Shown: piece after piece, positions 5,026 to 41,211 of the stretch
Position numbering within the stretch: the stretch's first letter is position 1
Layout of the letters: every line of letters begins with the position of its first letter
NCBI GenBank assembly: GCA_025603075.1
Contig: MU626260.1
Span: 124,001-188,000 of the forward strand
Reading direction: 5' to 3'
Source of the DNA: Neoconidiobolus thromboides FSU 785
Lineage: Eukaryota; Fungi; Entomophthoromycota
Length of the DNA: 64,000 nt
Made by a program: the position numbers and the translations under genes
Notes under the pieces: model-generated
Database searches by the model: none
What the model was told of the DNA's origin: nothing
Seen by the model: the letters and a program-made list of their open reading frames with translations, nothing else

Positions 5026-5277
5026 TTTATATAAAATGAAAAGAAATATTAAAAATAAACTTAGGAAAAAGGAAGGAAATTGAATTTTAAGGATTATTGA
5101 ATTGCAATAAAAAAGATAAATTCATGAATGACTTGATGGATGATTTATGAGAATTATTTGTTACGTGGCCATTATTGGAAATTTTGGGAAGTGGAGTTTT
5201 ATTGGTAGAGGGCTTTTTAGAAGAGTTTTGAGTTTTTTGGAAAAAACTGAGCGAGAAATGAGAATACTCTTTTTTTA

Positions 5278-7917
5278 ATGTTTAAGTTTTATACAACGAG
5301 AAATGAAGAAAGCTTTGGAAATATACCTAAGATACCATACTATTTAATCAACCATCAATGTAAAAAGGGTATTGAAGAGGAAGAGGAAGAGGAAATAATT
5401 CGGAAGAATAAAAGGAAGAAGTTGAATTCTAGTGTTAATAGGCAGGAGAAGCATCTGATTTATACTACTGTTCCTCAAAATGAAGAGAATGAGAATACGT
5501 TGGTTAAGCTAGAACTATATAATGAAGTAGATAAAGAAAGCTATTTGGATCTTAATTTGTTTTATTTAAAAAATGAAGAAGTTGACGAGATTAAGATTGA
5601 CAATAGTATCAATCTTAATAAAACTAGCTTTGAATTAAAAAATGATTCTAATTTCAAATATACTCTAGAAAATTATCAACAAGGTAAGCTCATTATAGAC
5701 AATAAAAAAATGACTCATTTCAATTTTATTAGATAATTATGAAGATATTGAATTAGTTTTATTTAAAATGAATTCTATCGATGATAATAGGTAATTTTAT
5801 TTATTACCTTTTATATGTAATAATTAATAAAAAATAACAGTCCAATACCAACAATAATATTAAACTATAAGAAGATGCAACATATAAGAATAATCACATT
5901 CGATATTAAACAAAATGAAATTAAAATGAAAATGGATTATAAATTTTCATTAAAAAAAGAAATTCAACATTTAGGTTATTTGTATCAACTACAATTAAGC
6001 TTATTAAAAAACAATTTATTTATTAATTTCGTCTTTTCATATCAGTGTAACAACTGTAATTATTTATCTTACTTTTCATCATTAATTAACTATGATTTAA
6101 AACATCGTAAAGTTCAGTTTATTGATAAAAATATAAATAATAATAATCATTATTATTATTCTGTTGTTCAATTTAATCAACAAAAATATTGTTTAATTAG
6201 TAATAACAATGAAAAGAATGAATTAAAATTACAAACTATTATTCAATTTGAAATTCAATCCACACAAAGTATTATTAAACTGTCAAGGAATGAAAAGATA
6301 GAAAAAGTACTAGTTAATGACAAGAAGATAGATTTTAATTATATTCAAGGATATATTATAACTAATAACAATTCCATTTATTATTTTGAAAATCAAGATA
6401 ATCGTTTAATTAGCCCTCCTTTATTTCAATTCGATAATATTCAAGATCTTTTTTCAAGATCTTTAAATATAAATAATGAATTTAAACTATTTATTTATTG
6501 TAATGATATTATTTATTTAATAAATAAGAATCAAAGTATTCAAAAATTAACATTAAAATTAGAGAACCTTCTTTTTATTTGGAATGAATTTATAGTTACT
6601 ATTTATAGTCAACACTTCAATCCCTTTTTATCATTACTTAATTTCAATGAACTCATCTATTGGTTGGAGACAAAGAATAAAAATAATAAGATTTTGGATG
6701 AAATTAATAATAATAATAATAATAATAAAATTCAACAACAAGTACTAAATCAAATACAGGAGAAGAGAGAGATGATGGTTAATGATATTCAATATATTCA
6801 ATCTCAAATTCAACTTAAAAAAAAATTGTTAAATGATTCAATAATAATTTTCAATGAAATTTGTAATAGAAATACATTTAATGAATTAATAGAAAATAAT
6901 AAAGAAAGTAATATTAATAACAACAGTAATTATTCGGATTTATTATTGGGGAACTTATTAATTAATCAAGCCAATTCTACGTTGAATTATTTAAAGATTG
7001 AAAAAATAGAATATTATAAAAAAGAGGAATTGAATTTTTGGTTGAAAATCAAGGTTACAAATGAATCTAAGTAAGTCAATTATTGAAATTAAATTAAATT
7101 TTTTAATTTTAAATGTTTAGTTATTCAATATATAATATTAAAGCTATTATTAATTTAATTTGTAATGAAAATGAATCATCGATTATTAATAATCAAGATT
7201 ATTTAATTTATTATATACAATATGAAAACAATCAAGAAATTATAAAATGTCAAGAAAGTAAAATTGTTTATCTAAAAATTCAATTAAATAAAAAACAGGC
7301 AATAAATCAATTAACGATCAATTCAAATCTACAATATCAATTAAATTTTTCGTATCAATTATTGAATTACAATAATAAAAATTATACATTTCAATCTAAT
7401 TTAATTTTATTTAAATTAACGGAATTAAATAAAATCACTTTATTTCAGTTGATTTCTACAACATTTGAGTGTACTTTTGAGTATAATTTTAAGGCTTTTG
7501 ATATAGATACATTGGTCTGTTTACTGAATAATGTATTAATTAATCAATTTTACTTTATTGATATTAGTTATCGTAACAATATAATTGATGAGTATAACAA
7601 AGAAGTTGAAAACAATATTGATAATAACAGTAATAAGATAGACAATAACATAAACCATATTAACAGTAATGAACCAAATAGCATCCAAATTATTAAGTAT
7701 TATGAGAATGAAGACTTGGAATTAGTATTAATAATACATTTCAAATTAAAAAGGATTCAATTTAAAATTCAAAATTTTTATAAATTTCAAAATTTCATTA
7801 ATTTATTTCTAAATACATTGAATAGGAATTATACAAATTTAAGTAAGTATTTTTATTAATTAGAATTGTAATATTTATAAACTTTTTTTAGATTTTAAAA
7901 TGATTTCTAATAGTTAA
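5278..7917 (+). CDS. ~830-aa N/I/K-rich uncharacterised protein with a beta-rich N-terminus, central coiled coil and beta-sandwich; possible FANCB/FAAP100-like fold
   Basis: Three track ORFs join in frame through introns ~5684-5732, 5791-5840, ~7072-7124 and ~7847-7891; final stop TAA at 7915-7917. The functional assignment is speculative. Confidence 0.7.
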
Positions 7918-8635
7918 TATGGGTCGAAAGATGAGATCACAATAAAATAGGAGAAGATTATTTTTACTTATTATTTTTACTTATTATTTTTAGTATTAAA
8001 ATAAAAATATTTAATGAGTTGAAAAGTTATTGTTACTAATCGCAACTAATTTACAATAGTTGATAAAGTTTAAAAAAGTTAAACTTGTATGAGTTATAAT
8101 ATTGTGTATTATCAAATATATATGTTGAAGATTGAAATTAAAGTGACTAACATATTTAAAAAATTTAATGTAATTAATTTAATATAAATTAAGAAACCCA
8201 GTTTAGTATAGTATTCAAAAAAGTTATAAATAAATCATTAATATTAACATTAATATTATATTTATTTAATATAAAATACTATTATTATCTTTACTCTTAA
8301 AAAATCTTATTTAATAAAATAATTTTTTATTTAGTAAGCATTTTTAAACGATAGATATTAACTTTTTATATAAAAAAATAATTTACAATTAATAAAAAAA
8401 GTAATGAAATTAAAAAAAATACTAGCTTAAACAGATTTAAAATTCTAAGTTATTGAATTATGTTCCAAAATTTGTTTCTAGATGTTCCATTCATAAGCTT
8501 ATTTGTAGAATTTTTATCTTAAAATAAATGATAATATAGGAAGCAAGTGTACTTTCGAAAGTTTAATTCATTGTATTTCTTTCTATCGGGTATACCACTC
8601 CCGCTTTCTTAACTTTATTTTATTAAAATTAAAAT

Positions 8636-8742
8636 ATATAGGGATATATTTTTGTGTTTAAGAACTTTATTAACAATTTTTCCGCTCAAATATGTTTAAA
8701 AAATGGAAAAACTGATGAAATAAAAAAAACCACACCCATATT
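8636..8742 (+). mobile_element. ~107-bp MITE-like dispersed repeat, copy 1
   Basis: atatagggatatatttttgtgtttaagaac...aaatggaaaaactgatgaaataaaaaaaaccacacccatat, clearly similar to the copies at 12.6, 12.9, 32.1 and 40.9-41.2 kb. The ends are imperfect inverted repeats (ATATGGG...CCCATAT). Confidence 0.7.
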
Positions 8743-9504
8743 CTAAAAGAACATAACAACCGGAACTCCCTACTTTATAGAAACTATACCAAATTTAATC
8801 CATTGCTTTCACATTATGTCCTTGGGTTTAATAATTTATTAAGTTCAAAATAGTAAGGTTCCGATTTGGTCTAACAACAGGTAAGAGTTAGTTCTCATAT
8901 TTAAATTAAACGTTCGATACTATAATAGACAAAATGTTTATATTGGACAAATTATAGGCCCAAAATTACATTAAACGAAATGTTGATATTGAAATAAGTA
9001 ATTTACTTTTTTATAACGAGAAAAATCTACATTGAAGAAAATATTCAATATTGCGATAAGCTAAACACCTAGAGCCATGATAAATAAACTATCTTACGTT
9101 ACAATCAATTAAATTCTTAACATTATAATAAATAGACTATCTTCAATTATAAATCAAATATTTGATATCGTAAAAGATGAAATATTCTAAATTGTGATAA
9201 TTAAATGTCCAATATTAAGACGAATAAACTACCTTAAATTCCAATAAATTAAATTGATAAATTATAATAAACATAATATCCGCAATCAAGTAAACTTCGA
9301 TATTTTATGTTAAAATAAAGGAAGTGTTCGACATTAAAATAAAATAAATGTTCTACAATAAGGTAAATTAAATGTTCAGTTTTGAAAAAAATTGGTTGAT
9401 GATAAAAAAATAGTATATAAAGGAGGAATTTCTATAAAAAAAGCAATACAAAATAATCTATTGTATCTTAGAATAGGACTAAAAAACGATAATTAGAAAG
9501 TGAA

Positions 9505-12393
9505 ATGTATAACAGTATCTTTAAGGATAAAATTTTAAACTTTTTTAAAAGATATATTTCAGTCGCAACGTTCTGTTTAGCTGTGATAATCTACATCTCT
9601 ACCTTTCAGCTTATGCTAAACTTTTTAACATTGTCAGAGAAATCGCCAAGCTATTGGAAAGAGTGGCAAAATAATTTTTTAAACAATAAGATAAGTTTAC
9701 CAGCGATTGAGACTGAGGATAATATTTATAAGTATAAATTTAATTTTGATGAATTAAGGAAATATAACGAATTTAACACTGATTTTGCGTATTCCCATTT
9801 AATGAGATTCGGTACCAAGGTACATTCCTATAACACCGATGAGATAAAAGATGTAGAAAGTTATATTCTATCCTACACTGAAGCTTTACAAGAGTTATCC
9901 ATGAAGTTATATGAGAAAAATATAGTTGAAGTAGATTTTGATCGTCGAACTAGTACATTAGCTGAAAAAACATTAAGTAAAATTACATCAAGAAGTGGTT
10001 TTCACACTACCTATTTTGAATCAAGTAACATTTTAGTAAGGGTTCATCCACTTTCATTTACTTTACCGAATAACAAGAATAGTAACAATACTATCAAAAG
10101 TTATGGAAAGCCAGCCTTACTTTTATCTGCCCATCATGATTCACAATCAACTAGTCATGGTGCAAGCGATGATGGCATTTCAGTAGTGTCATTATTAGAG
10201 TCATTAAGATTAAGCATATTGAATCCACCAAAAACTGTTGACCTTATTTACCACTTTAATTCTGGAGAAGAAAAGGGAATGCTTGGATCAAAAGCATTTT
10301 TATTACATGAATGGAAAAATGATGTTAAGGGATTTATTAATATGGAAGCCTCAGGTATTGGAAACAGAGGAATGATATTCCAATCTTCAAGTAATATAAT
10401 TAATAAGGCATTTTCAAAGACACCCCATCCACATAGTTCAGTTATTGCATTTACCGGCTTTAAATTAAGAGTAGTGAATTCTAACACGGATTTTCAAATC
10501 TATAATGCTGCTAATATTCCAGGAGTAGACTTTGCTATTTATTCAAATAGAGCGTTTTATCATACTTATAAAGATGATGCTTCTAACATGCATTTTGAAT
10601 CACTCAAAGTATTTGGTGAGACCGTGTGTTCAGCAATCAGTACTTTAGGGAAATCAAACGAAATTGATAAACTGGGCGACTCAGAAGATGGAGGTGTATT
10701 TTTTGATGTTTTAGGTTATTTTTCAGAGGTTTACTCATTCAAGTCGTATATTATAATATGCTCAATAGTAGCAACTTTGCAATTTATTTCAATTGTACTT
10801 ATTATAATTAAAACTGTTTATCTTAATTTAAACAAGAATGAAAATAATTTATCTCTAACTATAAGATTCACATTTCTCCCTATTCTTCGTGGACTTATTG
10901 CCATTATAGTAGGTATTTTATTTTATGTTGCCTTGGCAGTTGCATCCAATTACTTTTGGGTTAGCGGTGAAGGTATGGCAGCACATAGCAAATCAGATTA
11001 TGTGTTTGGATCTTATACATTCCTTGGATTAGTATGCTTGAGTGTAGCAATTTATTTATGGTCGTGGTATGAAAATGGCCGACAATTGGATTTGATTGAG
11101 CCTATTTTAATCCAATCAAGTGGTATATTTTGGTTGGTCTGTAACATCCTTAATATTGTACTATTGACTAAAGGGTTAGGTCCATTATATTTTTTGAGCA
11201 TCCTATCTATATTTAATTTTATATATTCAACAATACATGGTTTATTATTTAAGTATAATTATCCAAGCTTAAGTATTAATAATTATAAGAAATGTGCTAT
11301 GAATTTAAGTGACAATAGCTCTAATGACGATATCTCTAATGGTAGAGTCTCCAATGATGTTGCTTCCAATGATATCATCTATAGTAGTAACAAATATAAC
11401 CGCTATGTTGATGTTTTTAATAATTTATTACTATTTTTAATTATAATATTGTCCAATTTATTTTTCCAAGAAATAGTAATAGCGGTATTAGCAGGATTAA
11501 CACAAACAATCCCAACTGGCGGCAAAAAGACTGTTGTTTATTATTTTATTTCAAGCTTGGGGGGAGTATCTACTTTAATATCAATCAATTTAATACCAAA
11601 AGTAATTAAGAGAATTCCGATTAAGATGATGATTACCTTTTTAGTTATATGGATCATCATCTCAATTTCAGTATTTTTTAGTTTCCCAGTGAATGAAAAA
11701 GCACCATTAGTATTTCAAATTGGACAAAATAAATGTATTTCAGAGGAAATTGGATGTAATTTAATGAGAGAAAATATAGATCCGTTTAGTTTTGATAGTA
11801 ATGATAACTCTTACGGTTCAATTACTTCTACTTCTTATTTAAAAGAAATCATTAACAGTATTCCATCTGCAAAAGATAATCCTTTATCGAGTATTAAGCC
11901 TATTGGAGATCAATATGTTTATCACTATTCTGCCCCTGAGCCTATCTTTCCAATTGAGAATTACAAACTTATTAATGCTACTTTAAAAAAAGGTACATCA
12001 GATAATAATGACCTTAAACTAAGGGTTCAACTTAACGCATACAGAAGTAATATATGCTTATTAAGTTTTTATAAACAAGATGTCACAAATATAGCCATTA
12101 AGACAATTAATTCTAAAAATAAAAATGAGAGGTTAGTTATAGACAGTTATAACCAAAACGAAATTGTTTTAATGAGAAGAGATTACAATTTCCCATTCGA
12201 AGTATCTTTTGATTATTTAAAAAATAATACATTCCCAGCTATTATTAAATTAGGCATTTCATGCTTCTATGATGATCCAAAGTTCATCCCAGCTGTTCAA
12301 GAGATCAATGAACATATGCCTCGTTGGTCTACAGTCTCTACTACTAGAGTTGGTGTTTTATATCTCTTTAAAGATTTCGTCTTTGAACTTTAA
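9505..12393 (+). CDS. PFF1: M28-family multi-pass membrane metalloprotease (Pff1/ERMP1-like), single exon
   Basis: Zinc-ligand motifs SAHHDS, GASDDG, GEEKG, FINMEASG, SNTDF and YHTYKDD, followed by about 8 hydrophobic segments and a soluble C-terminal domain. Confidence 0.85.
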   Translation: MYNSIFKDKILNFFKRYISVATFCLAVIIYISTFQLMLNFLTLSEKSPSYWKEWQNNFLNNKISLPAIETEDNIYKYKFNFDELRKYNEFNTDFAYSHLMRFGTKVHSYNTDEIKDVESYILSYTEALQELSMKLYEKNIVEVDFDRRTSTLAEKTLSKITSRSGFHTTYFESSNILVRVHPLSFTLPNNKNSNNTIKSYGKPALLLSAHHDSQSTSHGASDDGISVVSLLESLRLSILNPPKTVDLIYHFNSGEEKGMLGSKAFLLHEWKNDVKGFINMEASGIGNRGMIFQSSSNIINKAFSKTPHPHSSVIAFTGFKLRVVNSNTDFQIYNAANIPGVDFAIYSNRAFYHTYKDDASNMHFESLKVFGETVCSAISTLGKSNEIDKLGDSEDGGVFFDVLGYFSEVYSFKSYIIICSIVATLQFISIVLIIIKTVYLNLNKNENNLSLTIRFTFLPILRGLIAIIVGILFYVALAVASNYFWVSGEGMAAHSKSDYVFGSYTFLGLVCLSVAIYLWSWYENGRQLDLIEPILIQSSGIFWLVCNILNIVLLTKGLGPLYFLSILSIFNFIYSTIHGLLFKYNYPSLSINNYKKCAMNLSDNSSNDDISNGRVSNDVASNDIIYSSNKYNRYVDVFNNLLLFLIIILSNLFFQEIVIAVLAGLTQTIPTGGKKTVVYYFISSLGGVSTLISINLIPKVIKRIPIKMMITFLVIWIIISISVFFSFPVNEKAPLVFQIGQNKCISEEIGCNLMRENIDPFSFDSNDNSYGSITSTSYLKEIINSIPSAKDNPLSSIKPIGDQYVYHYSAPEPIFPIENYKLINATLKKGTSDNNDLKLRVQLNAYRSNICLLSFYKQDVTNIAIKTINSKNKNERLVIDSYNQNEIVLMRRDYNFPFEVSFDYLKNNTFPAIIKLGISCFYDDPKFIPAVQEINEHMPRWSTVSTTRVGVLYLFKDFVFEL

Positions 12394-12591
12394 ACGTTTT
12401 CTTTAAAATAATAAAGTATCACACTTTTTAATATTTTTTATTAACTGAATTTTGCATTTTTAATAATTTTGTGGTATTTTTAGGATGTTTATAACTATTC
12501 ATATATGCTTTTTTTTTAAAAATACGAGGAATCACTTTGTTTAATCATTTCCAATGCTAAATAAATATTAAAAGGCTAATACCCAAACATG

Positions 12592-13000
12592 ATATGGGAG
12601 TGTTTTTTTTGACTTCATTATTTTTTCCACTTTTTAAGCGCTATTTGAGTGGAAAGATTGTAGTAAAATTCTTAAACACAAAAATACATCCCCATATTCT
12701 ATAAACACCTTTCCTCATGTAGATATTTACTTGCTACACTTTTTTATTAAAAAAAATGCAAAATATTTAAAATAGCAATATTTAAAATAGATCTAATTCA
12801 ATATTTCATTCACTATAAATATTGTGTTTAATCATATATGTTAATTCAAATGATAATATAAATAATCTTCTTTACGATTTTATTATTTTATAATATAGAT
12901 ATGGGGATGTATTTTTTTGTTTAAGAATTTTACTACAATCTTTCTACTCAAATAGCGCTTAAAATGGAAAAATAATGATATTAAAAAAATAGCCCCATAT
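12592..13000. mobile_element. Two inverted copies of the ~110-bp repeat (12592-12702 and 12894-13000) around a ~190-bp spacer; foldback/MITE-like element
   Basis: The reverse complement of the left arm aligns to the right arm along its whole length with only scattered mismatches (shared core tttaagaattttactacaatcttt(c/t)..actcaaatagcgcttaaaa). Confidence 0.8.
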
Positions 13001-14055
13001 TATTCATTCGAAAGTACAACAACACACTATTAACTTAGGATAGTGGTAACTTTAACACGATATTATATGCCAAATAAATCTAACTTGTAAAGCTATATTA
13101 TAATCGAATAAGGTTAATTTTTATAAATTTTAAACTCATTGATTTTTTACTATTGTAATATGACTGTTTTACAAAGTGTTGTATAAATCGTAAGTATATC
13201 ATAATTCATTTTTATTATAAAATAACTAAAAATTTTAATAGCTAATTTATTGTTTCTAAACTACTTTTTTTAAAGAATCTACAAAGTTTAAGTCAGTAGC
13301 ACTCTATTTCTATTTATAATAGATAAATGTAATAAAAAATAAAATGTGATTTTAACAGTTATTAGCTAAAGTTTTTTATTGAAATAACAATATAGGCAGG
13401 TGCCTTTTATCCTTCAATATTAGCTGTTATTTTACTTTATTCTATTTTACATTATAATAAGTACACTAAAATATGATAAAAGAATTTTCCCACATAAATG
13501 TTTTTTAAAATTAAATTATTTTTAAAATAAGCCACCAAGAAAAAATAATTTATTTCAAAACCACATCACTTCACATAGAATGACTTATTGTAATGTTAAA
13601 AATTGATGCAAATTCATTTTTTTTGTATGTGTACTTTAATATTATCAATATTTAAACCTTATTTAATTTCAAAATAAAATAAAATAGTATTTATCTAGCT
13701 AAACTTCAGAATTTATCATATTAAGTTTAAAAGCCGGTTAAAATCACTAAAATCTTTTGATAATCTCATCATGGATCAAAATTGATTATATTTTTGATTT
13801 GATTCTTTAAAATTTAGCCAACCAATTAAACTATAAAAATCGACTAATAAAAAACTGAAGCAAATAAAACATAAAAACAAAAATGCGAAATGATTTGTTT
13901 CTCGAAATCAAGTAACCAATCAAAGCAAGTGACTATGAAGATGCAGAGATTAGATTAAATAAATTTAATCTAAATTATATTGATTTAATTTTTAACTGTA
14001 TGTACTTTTGAAGCAATCAAAGTCAAGCTTCCACTTATAAATTACAATACAAATC

Positions 14056-16281
14056 ATGATGCGTTTAAATTCAAAATCGATATCATTACGCTATATAAAT
14101 CACATTAGTAAAGGTAACTATCATTAATGGTAAATGAATTTTTTTTAATCTTTAAATAAAGGTTTGAGACAATTCTCCACCTCAAAAAGTAGTAAAAAAG
14201 AAGTAGAGATCTTTATAAATGGAAATTCTATTAAAGTTGAAGAAGGCTCAGCACTTATTCAAGCATGTGAGAAAGCTGGAGTTGACATTCCAAGATTCTG
14301 CTATCACGAACGTTTAGGTGTAGCTGGTAATTGTCGTATGTGTTTAGTTGAACTTGAAAAATCTCCTAAACCAGTTGCTTCATGCGCTTTCCCAATTATG
14401 CCGGGTATGAAAGTTCATACTGATACTCCACTTGTAAAGAAAGCTAGAGAGGGTGTTATGGAATTTTTACTTTCTAATCATCCTTTAGATTGTCCAGTTT
14501 GCGATCAGGGAGGAGAATGTGACTTACAAGATCAATCTATGAGATATGGTTCCGATCGTTCTCGTTATCTTGAACCTGCAGGTAAACGTGCTGTAGAAAA
14601 TAAAAACTTTGGTCCTTTGGTTAAGACTATCATGACTCGTTGTATTCACTGTACTCGTTGTGTACGTTTTGCTAACGAAGTTGCTGGCGTTTCTGAACTT
14701 GGGACTTCTGGACGTGGTAATGACATGCAAATAGGCACTTATATTGAAAAAACTTTGAACTCAGAAATGTCTGGTAATATTATTGATCTTTGTCCCGTTG
14801 GTGCATTGACCTCAAAACCATATGCTATGACTGCTCGTCCTTGGGAATTGAAAAAGACTGAGAGTATTGATGTTATGGACGCTGTGGGCAGCAATATCAG
14901 AGTTGATTCTCGTGGTACTGAAGTTATGCGTGTCCTCCCACGTTTAAATGAAGAAGTCAATGAAGAATGGATCTCAGATAAAACTCGTTTTGCTTACGAT
15001 GGTCTTAAGAGACAACGTTTAACTTTACCATTAGTTAGAGAAGGTTCCCGTTTTACCCCTTCAACATGGGCTGATGCTTTAGAGATTATTGCATCTAAGA
15101 TCAAATCAGTTGATCCTAAAAGTATTAAAGCCATTGCAGGACAACTTGCAGATGCTGAAAGTTTAGTTGCTCTTAAAGATTTATTCAACAAACTCGGATC
15201 AGAAAACTTAACATTAGAAGGAAACAATGGAGATAAGAAAGCAGTTTATGAAACCGATTTCCGTTCCAATTATATTTTCAACTCTTCAATTCTTGGTATT
15301 GAAGAAGCTGACTTAGTTCTACTTGTTGGTACTAATCCACGTCATGAAGCACCAATTATCAACTCTAAAATTCGTAAATCATATATTAACGGACAGCTTG
15401 ACGTAGCATTAATTGGAGAAGAAGTTAAACTTACATGCGATTACAGTTATTTAGGAAGTGATGCAAGCACTATTTCTGAACTTATATCAGGAAAGGGTGA
15501 ATTCGCCAAACGTTTAGCAGAAGCAAAGAAACCTATGATTATTGTTGGTTCAGGAGTTGCTGAATCTGATAATGCTGCTTCCACTTTCTCAGAAATAGCC
15601 AAATTAGTTGAAAAATATCAATCCAAGTTCATTCAAGAAGGATGGAATGGATACAATTTACTTCAACGTGATGCTAGTCGCACTGCTGCTCTTGATATAG
15701 GTTACTCTTCTAACCCAGCTAACCAAACTGAGCCATCTCTTGTTTACTTATTAAATGCTGATAATATTACCACTAAAGATGTTCCAAAGGGCGCCTTTGT
15801 AGTCTATCAAGGTCACCATGGTGATGTTGGTGCACAATATGCTGATGTTATTTTACCAGGCTCTGCCTACACTGAAAAGAATGCTACTTACGTCAATACT
15901 GAAGGAAGATCTCAACAAACAAGATCTGCAGTTCCACCTCCAGGAGCTTCCCGTGAAGATTGGAAGATTATTCGTGCATTATCTGAAGTTGCAGGAGCTA
16001 CATTACCATATGATGATATTGTTGCTTTACGTGATCGTATGAGTGATGTATCCCCAACCTTAGTCTGTTATGATGAAATTGAATCAACAAGCATCTCACC
16101 ATTATTAGGATTAAGCCAATTAATTTCCAAAGATTCTAAAGCTTCTGGAGCTTTATTAAATCCATTAGGTGACTTCTATCTTACTAATCCAATTGCTAGA
16201 TCATCTCCTACTATGGCTAAGTGCTCCACCGCATTCACAAAAGGCGAAACACTAGATGAACCTCAAGCAGCTTTTGCTTAA
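14056..16281 (+). CDS. NDUFS1: NADH:ubiquinone oxidoreductase 75-kDa Fe-S subunit (complex I), mitochondrial
   Basis: Exon 1 at 14056-14113 (presequence), intron 14114-14161. Fe-S motifs [45 protein letters not shown] and DLCPVGAL. Confidence 0.97.
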
Positions 16282-24818: not shown

Positions 24819-26060
24819 TTACCCAGTAATAGAATCATGGGTAGGATCAACCCCATGCCTCATTCTATAATATTTTATGTATTCTAAAGTAATTTGATCC
24901 AATTCTTCCATAGTTAAGGCTATGCACTTTTTCTTAGTATCAAAGGTCAAGTTTTTTTTCATCATACTAACACCTGGTGCAATAGATCTAAGAAAAGTTT
25001 ATATTGTACTATGCCTATAATTATTTATACTATGCTTACTCTAAACAATTAGCAATCAACTGACTTTTTCTATGCATTAAACAAGTGGTGACATAAAAGA
25101 AGGTAGAAAAGGGACCTAAAAATAGATTTAATATGATAAAAAAAGGATTAGTTGACTTACTTTTTATATTTGGCGTTGGTGAAGGAATAAATTTAACTAA
25201 ATCAAAGCCATTCTTTATAAAAAAAGAAATGTCAAAAACTCAAAACTATAAAACAAAGGTTACCTTAGGAATAAAAGAGTCTTTATTTAAAGAAAACTGA
25301 TACTCCATTTGACCCATCGCTTTCAATGCAAACCCTAGCAGTGAGGTTTGATTATAAGACTAAAATTATGTCATTTATTTCTACCAAATATATTTAATGA
25401 TAATACCTTAATAACTTCGGGGGCGCATAGGGTGTATAGAGGGAACCTACCATACGAGAAGAAGCCTTCTCTTGATTCCAAAAAGTGAGTGATAAAATAG
25501 TAAAATTGAAAACTTTCTGAAATCCCTGACATGATTCCAAAAAATAATAGATCGGGGTGAACTAATTAAAATTACGAATATAAAATTAGACTTATTTGTA
25601 ATAATAATATTAAACTTAAAGTTTTACCATTTTCAAAAGGTACATTATCAATAATAATTTTATTCCTGTTACTCTTTGAAACATCATACAATAAATTATA
25701 CAACTTAGAACTTGTTCTCAAATTAAAATGTTCGTGCAATACAGGTATATTTGCCACTTTCTCTAGTTCTTCATAAATTTCAATAAAACTAGACGATGGT
25801 TCTAACGGTATTAAACTTTTACATCCATGGTTCAAAAACTGCCTTGTCATTAAACCAGGGCCTGGTAAAAACTCTAATATTATTTTGTCTTTTATTTTAT
25901 CTTTTCCTATCACTTCAGTCACTCTACTAGCCTCTTCTTCGTCAATAAAATAGCGTCGTTTCTTTTTACCAAAAGATTGGATCTTGGAATATTTTTTTAA
26001 CTCCGTTGATGTTAGCATACGTGGGAAATCGAACTTCTTTAACAGTTGAGTTAGTTTCAT
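24819..26060 (-). CDS. KsgA/Dim1-like mitochondrial transcription factor / rRNA dimethyltransferase (Mtf1/mtTFB-like), multi-exon
   Basis: Basic N-terminal presequence, ILEFLPGPGLMTRQFL SAM-fold motif, IPLEP, SFIPK, and C-terminal LTMEELDQITLEY; stop at 24819-24821. Confidence 0.65.
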
Positions 26061-26460
26061 TGGGAGTCTATTTTTCTACTTTTCTATTTTTGAGTTTATT
26101 TAAAAACCATGATTTTAATTTTCAGGCTTAACTTTGATAGTATATTACATTTTTAGTATATAAGGGTCTTATTGGCTTGAAGCTTTAGAATAGAATCTAA
26201 GTGTAAAAATCAAAAATTAGCATTGAAAATCCTAATGCCGTAGCAGTTGTGATACAAAATAATCAAATGATCTATATGACTACAATTAATTCCTTTAACT
26301 TCATATTAACTTTACATTGAAAATATCTCTATATCAAGAAACAGTATTTACTACTTTTAAGTAATATCTGTAACTGAAATAAAATTTCAACTAAAAAATA
26401 AAAAAAGCATTATTTCATATAAAAATAGTATAAATTTATTATAAACCCAATTTAATATCG

Positions 26461-28515
26461 TTAATTCCCACTAGTATAAGAAGGCATCAAATATTTAGGC
26501 ATACCAACAACAAATCATTGACTGTAAGTTGCCAAGAAAGTACCTTAGTTTCCTTTTTAGTTTCACTTTTACATAACCCTTCAAGCTCCGGATAAAGCGT
26601 ACCTCGACATAATGGGCATGAATTACTATAGTGAAGCAAGTTATTTTTCAACCGACTTTGACAAGCACTATGACCACAGCGGGTAGATATAGGTTCATAG
26701 ATGGTATCTTAGCAGATAGGACAGATAAATTCTACACACATAACTGTATCTAAAAACTCGGTCATTGCAGAGTGTTCCTTTTCCAATATCTTTTTCCAAG
26801 TTCTGAAATTTAAGAAATCTTTTCCAACTAAATCTAAAATTTGTTGATCTGGTTTATACAACGCAGCTTTTGGTTTAGTATCGGACTTTTGCTTTTTTGA
26901 CACTGGTTTTTCTTCATCCTCTTTTCCTCTTTTCCTCTGCCTTTCTTTTTTTTACTACTCGGTTTTTTAGTTGCTGCTTTACTATCCTTAATAACATCCC
27001 CACCTGAATCATACATAACTAAACCTAATTTTTCAATTTTTTTACCTTCTAGCTTCCAATGGATTGACTTAGAGCCATCTCTATGGAACTTGTATCTTCA
27101 AACAATAAACCATTGTTGTCCCGTTTCTGGCCAATAACAGACTAGTCTGTAGAGGTCATTATAGCATATTCCCTTAGCTAGTGCGAACTCTGAGAAATCT
27201 CCATTTAATTTGTAACTACGAGATACGCGAACTGGTGAACTTTTTTTCCAATATGGTGATATATCCGCGTTTTTAATGTTTATTGGCCACTTCATAGTGG
27301 TAGATAAGAGTAAGCTGGTGTATGTGAGTCCTTAATCGCTTGATTGTATAGCGGCACGTTTATTTCCAGAAAGATCTCTACTCCCGAACTTGTATAGTAA
27401 AAATGTTCATCAAAATCCTTGTCATACTCATAACCTCCGGCAAGGACAATTTGGTAAAGATAGCCTTTTCCTTAGCCATCAATTCCTGCTACATGTGGCT
27501 GAAACTGCTAATTCAGTAAATAAAGTATTGATATTGTATTACCGACGAACCCCATAGGTAAATGGGCTCGACAACAATAGCTAGACCCTATAGGCACATC
27601 AAGAATGGAACCTATATGATCCGACTTGACAATGGTACGTTTTTTTTATTAGCACTAGCATAACCCATCCCGTTATCCTACTGCCTTAATATCTGTTTTT
27701 TAACTTGACTTTTACCCTTTTGACCACCATTGAGAACAACATTTAGATAATTATAATAACTAAAGAAACACCTTTGAAATTCGATTAGAGTTTTAAAGGT
27801 AGACAAACCGAACTACTAGTTACCTTTTGGAATTTTTTCTAAAGGTTTGAGTAAACAAAAGATATGAAAGTAATATCGACATTCATCACAGATCAAAATC
27901 AATTCTTCACACAATTTTTTATCGCGCATATTGCATTCACCTTCTTTACAATCTGCTTCTGATGTATTGTTACATTTTTTGTAACCTTCACCTACTTGCG
28001 GAATAACTATCTCGTTATTATCTTTATCTACAGTAACAATGTTGCCTGCTTCATCAAAAAACATTGAGTTGTCTACTTGATATAAAGTAGGCTTCTTCTT
28101 TGGAACAGTGTTTCCATTAGTATCTTTGTTTTTATTATACAACTCCAATACCTCCTTTTCTACTTCGGTTTCTTCTATTGCTTCTACCTCTTTATTTTCC
28201 TCTATTTTTTTATCAACTACTTTTTCTGTCTTGATTTCTTCATTTGAATTTTAGTTGAAACTAAAATTGTGCCATTATCTCTGACATTATAACCATATAA
28301 AGTAAAGCCATCTTCAAGCTAGAAAGTTAATTAGCCAACTATTATTTAATATAGTATATCTTCTCATTACCTGTTTATCAAGGTAGATAAGGCGAAGAGC
28401 CACTTTCGGTTTTTAAAATTCCTTGGATATCAGCCCTTTAATCTTACTTACACTATTGTTTATTAAAGTTGAAAGATGCCTTTTCTCCGGTTAAAGTTTA
28501 TACTACGCAATACAT
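26461..28515 (-). pseudogene. UHRF1: Decayed UHRF1-like gene with UBL-PHD-SRA(YDG)-RING architecture and no tandem Tudor domain
   Basis: UBL (MYCVV*TLTGE...LRLIYLDKQ|LEDGFTLYGYNV), PHD (LILICDECRYYFHIFCLLKPL), SRA (HVAGIDG*...IVLAGGYEYD...RDLSGNKR...WKKSSPVRVSR...YWPETG...V*RY) and RING (CPIC*D...CGHSAC...CPLCR). At least 8 in-frame stops and at least 3 frameshifts. Confidence 0.9.
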
Positions 28516-28617
28516 GTTAACTATTGAGTATTAGGAAATTTTAATGTCAATTTTGAAAAATTTTAAATCATTGATCAATTTTGTTTTTTTGTGTAACTAA
28601 TCATTTAAGCTAAAAGT

Positions 28618-28646
28618 AAACGCGCTCTAGTGTACTTGGCGCGTTT
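28618..28646. promoter_or_regulatory. Inverted pair of CGCG elements (MCB/E2F-like G1/S sites) upstream of the UHRF1 pseudogene
   Basis: AAACGCGC-13 nt-GCGCGTTT, a perfect 8-bp inverted repeat about 100 bp upstream of the UHRF1 ATG in otherwise very AT-rich DNA. Confidence 0.45.
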
Positions 28647-29110
28647 CGAAGTGAGCTAGTAAACTTCAATGCTAATGTTCGGTTTTATTAAGTACATAAT
28701 AAATTTAAATCTATAGAGCATATTAAAAATTATATCTTTTATTTTAAATTTTTTAACAAATTTTATATAAATTGTATTTTAGTTTTAAACAAGCTTGTAA
28801 AGCTACAAATTTGTTTCTATATAAATAGCTTGACTATGTTTTTAACTATAAATTTTAAAAATATCTTAAAAGGTTTGAATAATTCGAGGTGATTTTTAGG
28901 AACTAATCAAATATTAAGTTTAGTCAACTAAAAAGTTATAAGTACTCAGTTTTATGAATTGTGAAGTAACAAAAGCAACTAAATTGTTAAAAAAATTAAG
29001 ATATAAGACATCTTCTGCTAAAAAATCTATTTACTTTCTAGTTTGTCTTACATAATTTAACTAAATGTATTTAAATAATCATCTTATAAAATTTTTATTG
29101 ACTATTTGCA

Positions 29111-30336
29111 TTAAGGTAGACGTCCAGACTGATTCCAAGCGACACAATCCTTAAACAAAACTTTATTTCCACCAAAAATATCCAGAGCACTATAGTATAG
29201 ATTAATGAAATTCAACATTTATTTATAAAAATGATTTACCTCCCAAAAGTCAAATCAATTTTACCATTTGATACTTTGTTTACTAATTCTAAATCCTTGA
29301 CACCTTAAATCAAATCTCAATAAAAATATATTTAAAAAACTAACTTCAATTTACTTGATGCTCCTCCAGCATATGTTGTAGGTATTGTAACCCATTTTGC
29401 TAACACTAAAAGGCATTAATTTCTTCCATTTAGTCAAATTATTTTACTTTCTATTAATTCAATATCTACTCCTTGGCATAAACCTTCTACATCAGCTGCA
29501 TGAATAAGGAATTCACTAATGTTGCATTATTACTATTTACATTTTGTCTTTTATGGCATTACCTGCAATAGTCTTCCAACTTCTGTAAATTGACTAAAAA
29601 AACTTAAATATAATTATATAAAAAACCAAATAAACTAACCCTGATTAATTTCCAAGTTTGTAATTGTTTGCCATTTGTTTATACATACAAACCAGGAATC
29701 TCTCACTTTTCGGCAGCTAAAAACTATATAAAACTATAGTTTAAAGCTATATTTACTAATTACCTCAAATCTACTACCAACTTATCCTTTCCGATTTTGT
29801 CACAAAGTGATTTTAATCGCTTATATGATAACTCTCCATTTTGAAATAACCAACTAGTTACTATTACCTATATAATACAAATGTCAAATTCCAATCATAA
29901 AACATTGAAATTGCTCTACCTTTGACGCTCCTTTTTCTAACCAATAGCTTGCATTATCTATTGTTATTCCTCCCCCTATCTGTATATGATCTAAAATCAT
30001 CTTTAACCAAAATATTTTTAAAGCATTAATTTTATATACTTACTCGACCACTCATTCAACGCTTCCAATGCAGCTTCGTCATTACCATTACCAAGCTTTA
30101 TCAGATGTGTACCAAGTAAATTTTCTTGCTTGTATATGCTGGCGAAATAGCTTGATGGTTTACTATTAACTGAATTAACATTGTATATTATAGTTCATAA
30201 TGATGAAATACTCGGCAACAAAATTCGTTCTTAACTCTTGGGAATCTTCTTTTAAAGTACCACCAATAATCTGCTTCACTTTGCCTTCATGTAAATCTAT
30301 GCATGGCCGAAATTTACTGTAGCTAGAAGTTGACAT
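29111..30336 (-). CDS. HIS6: ProFAR isomerase (HisA), eukaryotic type, multi-exon
   Basis: [63 protein letters not shown] and SALDIFGG. Confidence 0.93.
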
Positions 30337-32054: not shown

Positions 32055-32157
32055 ATTTGGGGAGATGTATTTGTCTAAAAATTTTACTGGTAGCTTTTTA
32101 TTTAAATTGTGCTTAAAAAATGGAAAAAGTGATGAAATAAAAAAAACGTCCTCATTT
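32055..32157 (+). mobile_element. Degenerate copy of the ~107-bp MITE-like repeat
   Basis: tttggggagatgtattt...aattttact...gcttaaaaaatggaaaaagtgatgaaataaaaaaaacgtcctcat matches the family consensus. Confidence 0.6.
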
Positions 32158-32570
32158 GCTATTTTAAATTTAAATATTGTTAATTATTATTCTTCTAGTA
32201 ATGGTAAAAAATAATAAGAATATATTAAATACTTTTTAAAATAACTATTTATGACATCGGGGATAACATAACTTTCAATATATGCGATTAGGAAGCAAGG
32301 TTGATCCGAACATTCCTATTGTAACGATGTTCAATGTAATGTGGCTTATAAAAATTCTTCAAGAACTTTTAAATCCTATGTTAACCTTACTAACTTTTTC
32401 TGGCCAATAAAATGGATTGTAGATAAAATTATCTTACGATAAAAGTAAGTGGTTTGTTCAAATGTATAATTGGACGAGCTTTTAATTCTTTTTCCGACCT
32501 ATTAGTTCTGTATTCTATTATTCTCTATCTTTAATAGCATTACTTTGTATCTTTTTACTAAAAGGTTTGG

Positions 32571-40894: not shown

Positions 40895-41211
40895 ACAAGG
40901 ATGTCTTTTTGGCTTATTTTTTCCATTCTCTAAGCACTATTGAGCGGAAAACATGTTAGTAAATCTCTTAAAGAAAAAGAAAAATCTCCATATGGGAATG
41001 TGTTTTTTGTTTAAGAGCTTTACTAATAATTATTTTACTCAAACACCACTTAAAAAATTAAAAATTAAAAAAATAATAAAGCCAAAAAAAACATTCCTAT
41101 ATATTAAAGTGGGAATGTTTTTTTGGTTTCATTACTCTTTCTATCTTTTAAGGCCTATTTGAACGGAAAAATTGTTAATAAAATTCTTAAATACAAGGGT
41201 ATACCCTCATT
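40895..41211. mobile_element. Array of three abutting copies of the MITE-like repeat in alternating orientation (-,+,-)
   Basis: Units at ~40895-40993, ~40990-41102 and ~41108-41211; the first junction is the palindrome CCATATGG. Confidence 0.7.

Follow-up and report, generated by a model that had tools for sequence, protein, structure and literature searches.

A decayed UHRF1 orthologue between two transcribed genes

The window, a 64-kb stretch of Neoconidiobolus thromboides FSU 785 DNA (contig C3, positions 124001-188000, from a fragmented assembly of 24.6 Mb in 799 contigs), is eukaryotic DNA with 27% GC and short introns. Genes neighbouring the locus described here are open in the standard code, with ORFs of up to 962 aa, and both flanking genes yield spliced RNA contigs; one is HIS6-like, a label that comes from an N-terminal motif read by eye in the ORF, and the other we take to be an mtTFB-like gene, following an earlier note made on the bare sequence. 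Between them lies a decayed orthologue of UHRF1, an E3 ligase whose SRA domain reads hemimethylated CpG.

A frame-aware protein-to-DNA aligner was used to compare the spliced relic sequence with the proteins of intact relatives. The closest of all matches are two intact ORFs, the UHRF1 of Entomophthora muscae (P0062; KAJ9066628.1, annotated as 'E3 ubiquitin-protein ligase uhrf1') and an Entomophthorales-like UHRF1 of 613 aa (P0063), which the relic resembles in domain order from Met1 to the ...IPSY tail, with 49-51% identity over 429-591 codons, and from which it differs by at least nine in-frame stops, seven frame changes, and the loss of zinc ligands and SRA core residues. Against P0063, 591 codons align at 49% identity, with seven aligned stops and seven frame changes, and the colinear stretch runs from Met1 (ATG 28515) as far as the C-terminal tail, near 26470; P0062 aligns at 51% identity, and an Acaulospora orthologue (P0011) was aligned as well. 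The extent of the relic and its domain remnants are as follows.

26461..28515, minus strand: fungal UHRF1 orthologue (UBL-PHD-SRA-RING), read here as a unitary pseudogene; end-to-end frame-aware alignment, from ancestral ATG to ancestral stop
28515-28247, minus strand: ubiquitin-like (UBL) remnant; alignment with residues 1-69 of P0063 and with the ubiquitin region that Pfam marks in P0011
27935-27753, minus strand: PHD finger remnant; Pfam PHD and alignment
27618-27071, minus strand: SRA remnant; Pfam SAD_SRA (PF02182) on pieces, genome scan and alignment
26726-26604, minus strand: RING finger remnant; Pfam zf-C3HC4_2 and alignment

In the public annotation this locus is represented by KAI9298931.1 ('hypothetical protein K502DRAFT_361935'), which is 93% identical to part of it and whose 637 aa combine stop-free pieces of the relic with the downstream mtTFB-like gene; this chimera conceals the relic, and surveys of gene presence and absence would be misled by it. 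Upstream of the relic, an ACGCG...CGCGT palindrome persists at 28618-28646.

Domain remnants and lesions

The four domains are preserved to different degrees. In the UBL remnant, 21 of 53 residues are identical to the ubiquitin region of P0011, and the remnant is interrupted by a frame change near 28455 and by TAA codons at 28500-28498 and 28415-28413; its stop-free pieces of 32-33 aa give no Pfam match, being too short. The PHD finger is matched in a stop-free piece by PF00628 (E=3e-4, 21.2 bits, under the cut-off of 24) and is identical to the P0011 PHD at 21 of 43 residues, with its final Cys pair gone, the WYCPDC of the intact finger aligned as FF--SY, and a frame change just past intron 2. 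The SRA remnant agrees with the E. muscae SRA domain at 94 of 166 residues, has three stops inside and keeps a readable NKR-finger motif (SGNKR); its pieces score 15.3 and 19.2 bits in Pfam, and the genome scan gives 29.7 and 22.5 bits, relative to a cut-off of 30.7. It is damaged by a TAG-bearing insert of 39-42 nt, by the stops TAA 27474, TAA 27334 (formerly Gln) and TGA 27100 (formerly Trp), and by a frameshift of 1 nt at 27386. The RING remnant is matched by zf-C3HC4_2 in its second half only (26.2 bits vs a cut-off of 27) and shares 25 of 41 residues with E. muscae; its first Cys pair is followed by a TAA (26711), and at 26654 Arg takes the place of a zinc-ligand Cys.

The tandem Tudor domain (PF12148) finds no Pfam match in the 144-aa piece that links UBL and PHD in the relic. 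Intact fungal orthologues (Basidiobolus, many Kickxellales, Glomeromycotina) likewise lack it and carry ubiquitin, PHD, SRA and RING domains, so the relic inherited this lack from the fungal form and did not acquire it by decay, in agreement with the earlier note, which had called this a fungal variant of the architecture. Animal UHRF1 (ICBP90/Np95) shares the UBL-PHD-SRA-RING order of the relic and matches a fungal orthologue with E about 1e-116, but differs in carrying PF12148, which is found neither in the fungal orthologues nor in the relic.

The stops and frame changes assigned by alignment to the intact protein are listed here.

28500-28498, minus strand: TAA stop, aligned to R of the intact protein
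28415-28413, minus strand: TAA stop, aligned to K
27680-27678, minus strand: TAG stop, aligned to W
27474-27472, minus strand: TAA stop, aligned to S
27334-27332, minus strand: TAA stop, aligned to Q
27100-27098, minus strand: TGA stop, aligned to an invariant W; reference lineage only
26711-26709, minus strand: TAA stop, aligned to H
~28455-28465, 28182-28258, 27768, 27646, 27386, 26916-26960 and 26497-26509, minus strand: frame changes, from the frame-aware alignment

We find that the relic carries at least nine in-frame stops in total, together with the seven frame changes. The earlier note had described four domains in UBL-PHD-SRA-RING order, broken by eight stops and four frameshift zones; the order holds in Pfam searches of stop-free pieces (PHD, SRA and RING) and in the frame-aware alignments, and all eight stops are present in the minus-strand sequence, although only one of two possible frame paths brings the TAA at 28253-28251 into frame. 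The UBL and PHD frames disagree on either path, with no intron between them. All four frameshift zones are real (~28455-28465, 27386, 26916-26960 and 26497-26509), and there are lesions besides: three frame changes beyond those listed in that note (28182-28258, 27768 and 27646), further stops within a 77-nt unalignable stretch (28182-28258) and within the 39-42 nt insert (27505-27546), the latter including an in-frame TAG that the note did not list.

Decay extends to residues that other fungi keep invariant. Of 115 columns that are invariant among five intact fungal orthologues (Entomophthora, Acaulospora, two Entophlyctis and Kickxella), 36 (31%) are altered in the relic, three of these being stops, and the lost residues include zinc-ligand Cys and SRA core positions. 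Single-step changes at invariant codons (n=30) include 12 G>A and five C>T, and 23 of them go from G:C to A:T. As a rough estimate from sequence comparison, 31% altered invariant codons would translate into some 0.1-0.16 substitutions per neutral site.

Spliced transcripts and independent assemblies

Contigs from four public runs were placed on 25300-29300. Two are DNA-like: X2 is identical to the reference across the relic locus, and X4, which bears another organism label, has 23 differing positions and two indels over 26314-29131. The other two, X3 and X7, are RNA-like, and we infer that they derive from RNA because they skip introns exactly at GT..AG boundaries in the relic and in both neighbours and have zero depth in both intergenic flanks.

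26413..28490, minus strand: extent of the spliced transcript; RNA-like X3 contig, 1997 nt, 0 mismatches to the genome
28319..28370, minus strand: intron 1, 52 nt, GT..AG; skipped in X3 and X7
27772..27823, minus strand: intron 2, 52 nt, GT..AG; spliced in X3, retained in X7

Exactly two introns, both of 52 nt, are gone from the X3 contig, which bears out the earlier reading that splice sites are still visible at this locus, and the presence of introns establishes that the relic is non-processed and no retrocopy. Every stop and every frame change is present in the spliced relic RNA, whose longest ATG-started ORF is 89 codons; with so many stops and frame changes, no UHRF1 protein is possible from it. 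The absence of any difference between DNA and RNA in the X3 contig indicates that RNA editing is absent. Pseudogene status, as first proposed from the bare sequence, is thus borne out by lesions shared among independent DNA (X2, X4) and RNA-like (X3, X7) assemblies, which also answers the concern over assembly error: no intact ORF occurs in the RNA, and the stops stay in its mature form. Extra short introns were considered as a source of the lesions, and the candidate GT..AG pairs at about 28455-28425 and 27545-27511 are unspliced in the RNA contigs; removing the latter would leave the frame unrestored.

Variation among strains and the age of the decay

X4 and X7 are diverged from the reference by ~0.8-1.0%, and all lesions but one are common to them. 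The exception is position 27098, where both have T>C on the plus strand and so read TGG (Trp) in place of the reference TGA. Each also has lesions of its own: private to X4 are a CAG>TAG stop at 27501 and a frame shift in the Lys/Glu-rich linker, where TCCTCTTT is inserted behind 26916 as one extra copy of a short tandem unit, and private to X7 are a stop at 26531 (CAA>TAA) and, in the RING, a replacement of Cys by Tyr at 26662.

26917..26940, minus strand: gaggaaaa 8-nt tandem unit in the Lys/Glu-rich linker; one extra copy in X4 shifts the frame

The 23 scorable strain differences fall at codon positions one, two and three in the proportion 9/7/7, with 17 non-synonymous and six synonymous, a split that is expected without selection and fits neutral drift of the relic; strain divergence within it (~0.8-1.0%) equals that of flanking intergenic DNA. 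Since ~31% of invariant residues are gone and nearly all lesions are common to strains ~1% diverged, the loss of coding is old on the population scale. The loss of UHRF1 coding function is complete and far predates the strain splits, and the decay goes on.

Other UHRF1 copies and DNA methyltransferase genes

A scan of the whole assembly with the SRA family PF02182 returns four loci (C3, the relic described above, and C44, C12 and C126), with stops inside every match. Frame-aware alignment identifies C44 and C12 as PHD-SRA-RING relics and C126 as an SRA fragment, each with several stops (often at Trp codons) and frameshifts, as read in the reference assembly only, and with scores far below that of the C3 copy, which is the best preserved of the four and the nearest to E. 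muscae UHRF1. The four UHRF1-like copies share only ~30-45% protein identity. A search of the whole assembly with E. muscae UHRF1 adds no further SRA-bearing locus, the remaining matches being RING-only. No intact UHRF1 paralogue is present in the assembly, which is fragmented, and a copy could lie in unassembled DNA. Several UHRF1 copies seem normal for the clade, to judge by a related AT-rich metagenome contig (L018) with three tandem SRA-RING genes and by C. coronatus, for which three adjacent UHRF1 accessions are listed (eLife RP86721 source data).

The corresponding scan for DNA methyltransferases (PF00145, whole assembly) returns C175, C208 and C40 only. C208 and C40 match DNMT2/TRDMT1 tRNA methyltransferases. 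The C175 match scores 46.9 bits and contains stops, again as read in the reference assembly only, and two of its stop-free pieces match, among solved structures, DNMT1 only (E 1e-8 to 1e-9). A weak BAH match (17.7 bits) accompanies it, and upstream on the same strand, at C175:31057-31230, lies the sole RFD match in the genome (19.8 bits, cut-off 22, with a TGA inside), so that RFD, BAH and MTase stand in an order that fits DNMT1. Motif I of DNMT1-type enzymes is usually FSGCGG; in C175 it reads FSEYRS in three-frame translation, frames and motif X are disrupted, stops stand at Gln positions around motif IX/X, and frame changes and an inserted copy of an abundant ~100-nt MITE-like repeat are present. 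We read C175 as the relic of a DNMT1-type gene, which on sequence grounds would leave the genome with no working member of that type. The PF00145 scan of the assembly returned no gene of the DNMT5, Dim-2 or RID type; MT-A70 genes are present and intact.

The search for an intact paralogue or methyltransferase that the earlier note had proposed therefore ends with four SRA loci that all contain stops, a sole DNMT1-type gene that is itself a relic, and no DNMT5 or DIM-2 type. That note was right that a UHRF1 gene is dead here, but where it saw a single gene there are four related UHRF1-like relics and, in addition, a relic of DNMT1. Its proposal of pathway loss gains from the lack of an intact paralogue in the assembly and from the DNMT1 relic, the loss of 5mC itself being a probable consequence; its wording 'mid-loss' and 'recently' goes too far, given the replacement of 31% of invariant residues and the sharing of lesions among strains.

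Alternative explanations

It is scarcely credible that the UHRF1 gene is functional and that its lesions reflect unseen introns, assembly or sequencing errors, stop reassignment, readthrough or RNA editing. Short introns are numerous in this AT-rich genome, and several TAA codons stand at Gln-like positions and TGA or TAG at Trp positions, resembling some variant genetic codes; the lesions nevertheless agree in four independent assemblies, the RNA contig drops two introns only and retains all stops without a single difference from the DNA, recoding cannot account for seven frame changes, and the changed invariant residues include zinc ligands. Neighbouring standard-code ORFs run to 962 aa and the strain differences have no codon-position bias; a variant genetic code is excluded by these long ORFs, by the frameshifts and by the TGA/TGG polymorphism at 27098. 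A very improbable reading is that the locus is only a dead duplicate, with an intact and expressed UHRF1 paralogue elsewhere keeping the function and the pathway not lost. The multi-copy state of UHRF1-like genes in the clade (three tandem SRA-RING genes in L018, three adjacent accessions in C. coronatus) and the fragmented assembly speak for it; against it, all four SRA loci of the whole-assembly scans have stops, the copy nearest to E. muscae UHRF1 is also the best preserved, and the DNMT1-type partner is a relic too.

The mode of decay and the persistence of a transcript admit two further readings. Repeat-triggered C-to-T mutagenesis of the RIP kind, rather than relaxed selection after pathway failure, could have killed the four paralogues, and the death of all four copies, the origin of stops from Trp and Gln codons, and the spectrum of single-step changes (17/30 G>A or C>T, 23/30 G:C to A:T) point that way. 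RIP, however, needs high nucleotide similarity between duplicates, and copies that share ~30-45% of their protein sequence lie far under it; seven frameshifts and several transversions are not its products, the PF00145 scan matched no RID- or Dim-2-type methyltransferase, TpA and CpA+TpG observed/expected in the relic are near the window average (in a context unpolarised by an outgroup), an A:T-biased spectrum is expected anyway at 27% GC, and the single-copy DNMT1 relic decayed in the same manner. We regard RIP as quite unlikely. Also unlikely, if a little less so, is that the coding function is gone and the spliced transcript has been kept for a non-coding or regulatory role. Transcription and splicing in two RNA-like data sets with different strain labels, and the upstream palindrome, favour such a role, as does a contig k-mer depth comparable to that of the neighbouring mtTFB-like gene, where nonsense-mediated decay would be expected, although contig depth does not measure expression. 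On the other side, the relic diverges between strains by as much as flanking intergenic DNA (~0.8-1.0% in both), one strain retains intron 2, and it is simpler to suppose that the promoter of a young relic has kept some activity.

A probable collapse of the DNMT1-UHRF1 module

The reading that we prefer, with a probability of roughly 0.86, is that the locus is a transcribed unitary UHRF1 pseudogene in a collapsed DNMT1-UHRF1 module. The module would comprise the four UHRF1-like relics (C3, C44, C12 and C126) and the single DNMT1-type relic (C175), leaving two DNMT2 genes; failure of one partner may have relaxed selection on the other members, which then decayed, and the promoter and both introns of the C3 relic still work and give rise to spliced RNA. 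CpG maintenance methylation would, on this evidence, be absent from N. thromboides. The balance tips slightly towards the more far-reaching statement that the whole module collapsed within Entomophthoromycotina, with every component a datable relic and the canonical UHRF1 relic still transcribed and spliced.

The cytosine methylation machinery has disappeared on many occasions in eukaryotes, and to our knowledge such losses are nearly always inferred from missing genes, which are silent on order and timing. UHRF1 is the established licensing factor of DNMT1 (PMC9614205, PMC5887372), and co-loss of DNMT1 and UHRF1 is recurrent across eukaryotes (Funabiki et al., eLife 2023, RP86721). As in those cases, writer and reader vanish together in N. 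thromboides while relatives keep both; the survey differs in scoring presence or absence of annotated proteins, whereas N. thromboides keeps both partners as datable relics. Its source data list Conidiobolus coronatus (DNMT1 KXN74494) and Basidiobolus meristosporus with DNMT1 and UHRF1, and C. coronatus is the only 'Conidiobolus' that searches of the survey returned. Our search of the literature on N. thromboides found no account of 5mC machinery, UHRF1 decay or UHRF1/DNMT1 relics. DNMT1/UHRF1 co-loss is thus known as a type of event, and what is new is the N. thromboides example, with five readable relics and intact relatives. A further fungal relative of UHRF1 tied to maintenance methylation, like the family of the relic, is the 'stripped-down' homologue of Cryptococcus neoformans, which assists DNMT5 (review PMC13297926); N. 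thromboides differs in that its relic has the full UBL-PHD-SRA-RING architecture and its genome lacks a DNMT5-type match in the PF00145 scan.

If the collapse is as proposed, the order in which writer and reader are lost and the pace at which a genome relaxes after 5mC disappears become tractable. Comparison of Neoconidiobolus with Conidiobolus could date the collapse, show whether writer or reader failed first, and test for takeover by 6mA or other systems. At the E. muscae UHRF1 locus, the only other gene call within 10 kb is a split one for its own UBL exon, which leaves no gene order to compare with that of N. thromboides. In the N. thromboides window, CpG observed/expected is ~0.60 vs ~1.13 for GpC, and the low CpG value could reflect earlier methylation whose imprint is fading.

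Annotation and transcription of the UHRF1 relic

We find that the public FSU 785 annotation places a 637-aa 'hypothetical protein' (KAI9298931.1; window 24819-28064) across the UHRF1 relic, and that this model joins the stop-free fragments of the relic and the downstream mtTFB-like gene via invented introns. KAI9298931.1 is a chimeric mis-annotation, one that surveys would score as 'UHRF1-like present'. At window 25300-26016 the mtTFB-like gene is overlapped, in the DNA-like public runs X2 and X4, by a second set of contigs that lies 5-8% off the reference, e.g., 18 differences in 231 nt, pointing to either a second haplotype that has diverged or a paralogue of this neighbouring gene.

Contigs from two RNA-like runs, X3 and X7, both stop at window 28485-28490, an end that lies downstream of the ancestral start codon (ATG, 28515), with the X3 contig reading into Illumina adapter at this end; the present-day transcript may start within the former coding region. 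Upstream of the relic, at 28618-28646, is a palindrome (ACGCGCC...GGAGCGCGT-like) with two MCB/E2F-like ACGCG half-sites, which may be a reason for the persisting transcription.

Repeats and other UHRF1-like loci

A MITE-like repeat of ~100 nt is abundant in the about 124 kb examined (at least 28 copies, 71-84% identity), with copies inside the DNMT1 relic on contig C175 and the UHRF1 relics on C44 and C12, and none in the window relic. Some of the copies, together with a low-complexity tract, are listed here:

Repeat and low-complexity features
L015:5275-5385 (C175), MITE-like repeat copy
L012:5722-5816 (C44 region), MITE-like repeat copy
Locus L013:5620-5718, MITE-like repeat copy
Window 8644-8732, 12601-12697, 12897-12972, 32061-32159 and 41115-41191, MITE-like repeat copies
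L012:6525-7064 (C44:16524-17063), Asn-rich low-complexity tract

The last of these, 540 nt long, separates the SRA and RING parts of the C44 relic. Some relatives have UHRF1 as a small tandem family: L018, a fungal-looking contig of 28.5% GC from JGI metagenome 3300042649, carries three UHRF1-like genes with SRA and RING calls in tandem (5201-15207).

CpG composition and remaining candidate methylation-associated genes

CpG observed/expected is about 0.60 throughout the whole window and loci L011-L016, in genes, relics and intergenic sequence alike; for GpC the value is about 1.1, and for TpG+CpA about 1.0. This even CpG deficit could be the fading imprint of past CpG methylation, or could reflect context-dependent mutation bias. 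Alongside dead DNMT1 and UHRF1, the assembly retains one intact zf-4CXXC_R1 (CDCA7-like) match and intact MT-A70 matches (together C257:9314-9517, C236:2906-3477 and C204:21362-21538); these persisting matches are candidate parts of either a 6mA or an RNA m6A system.
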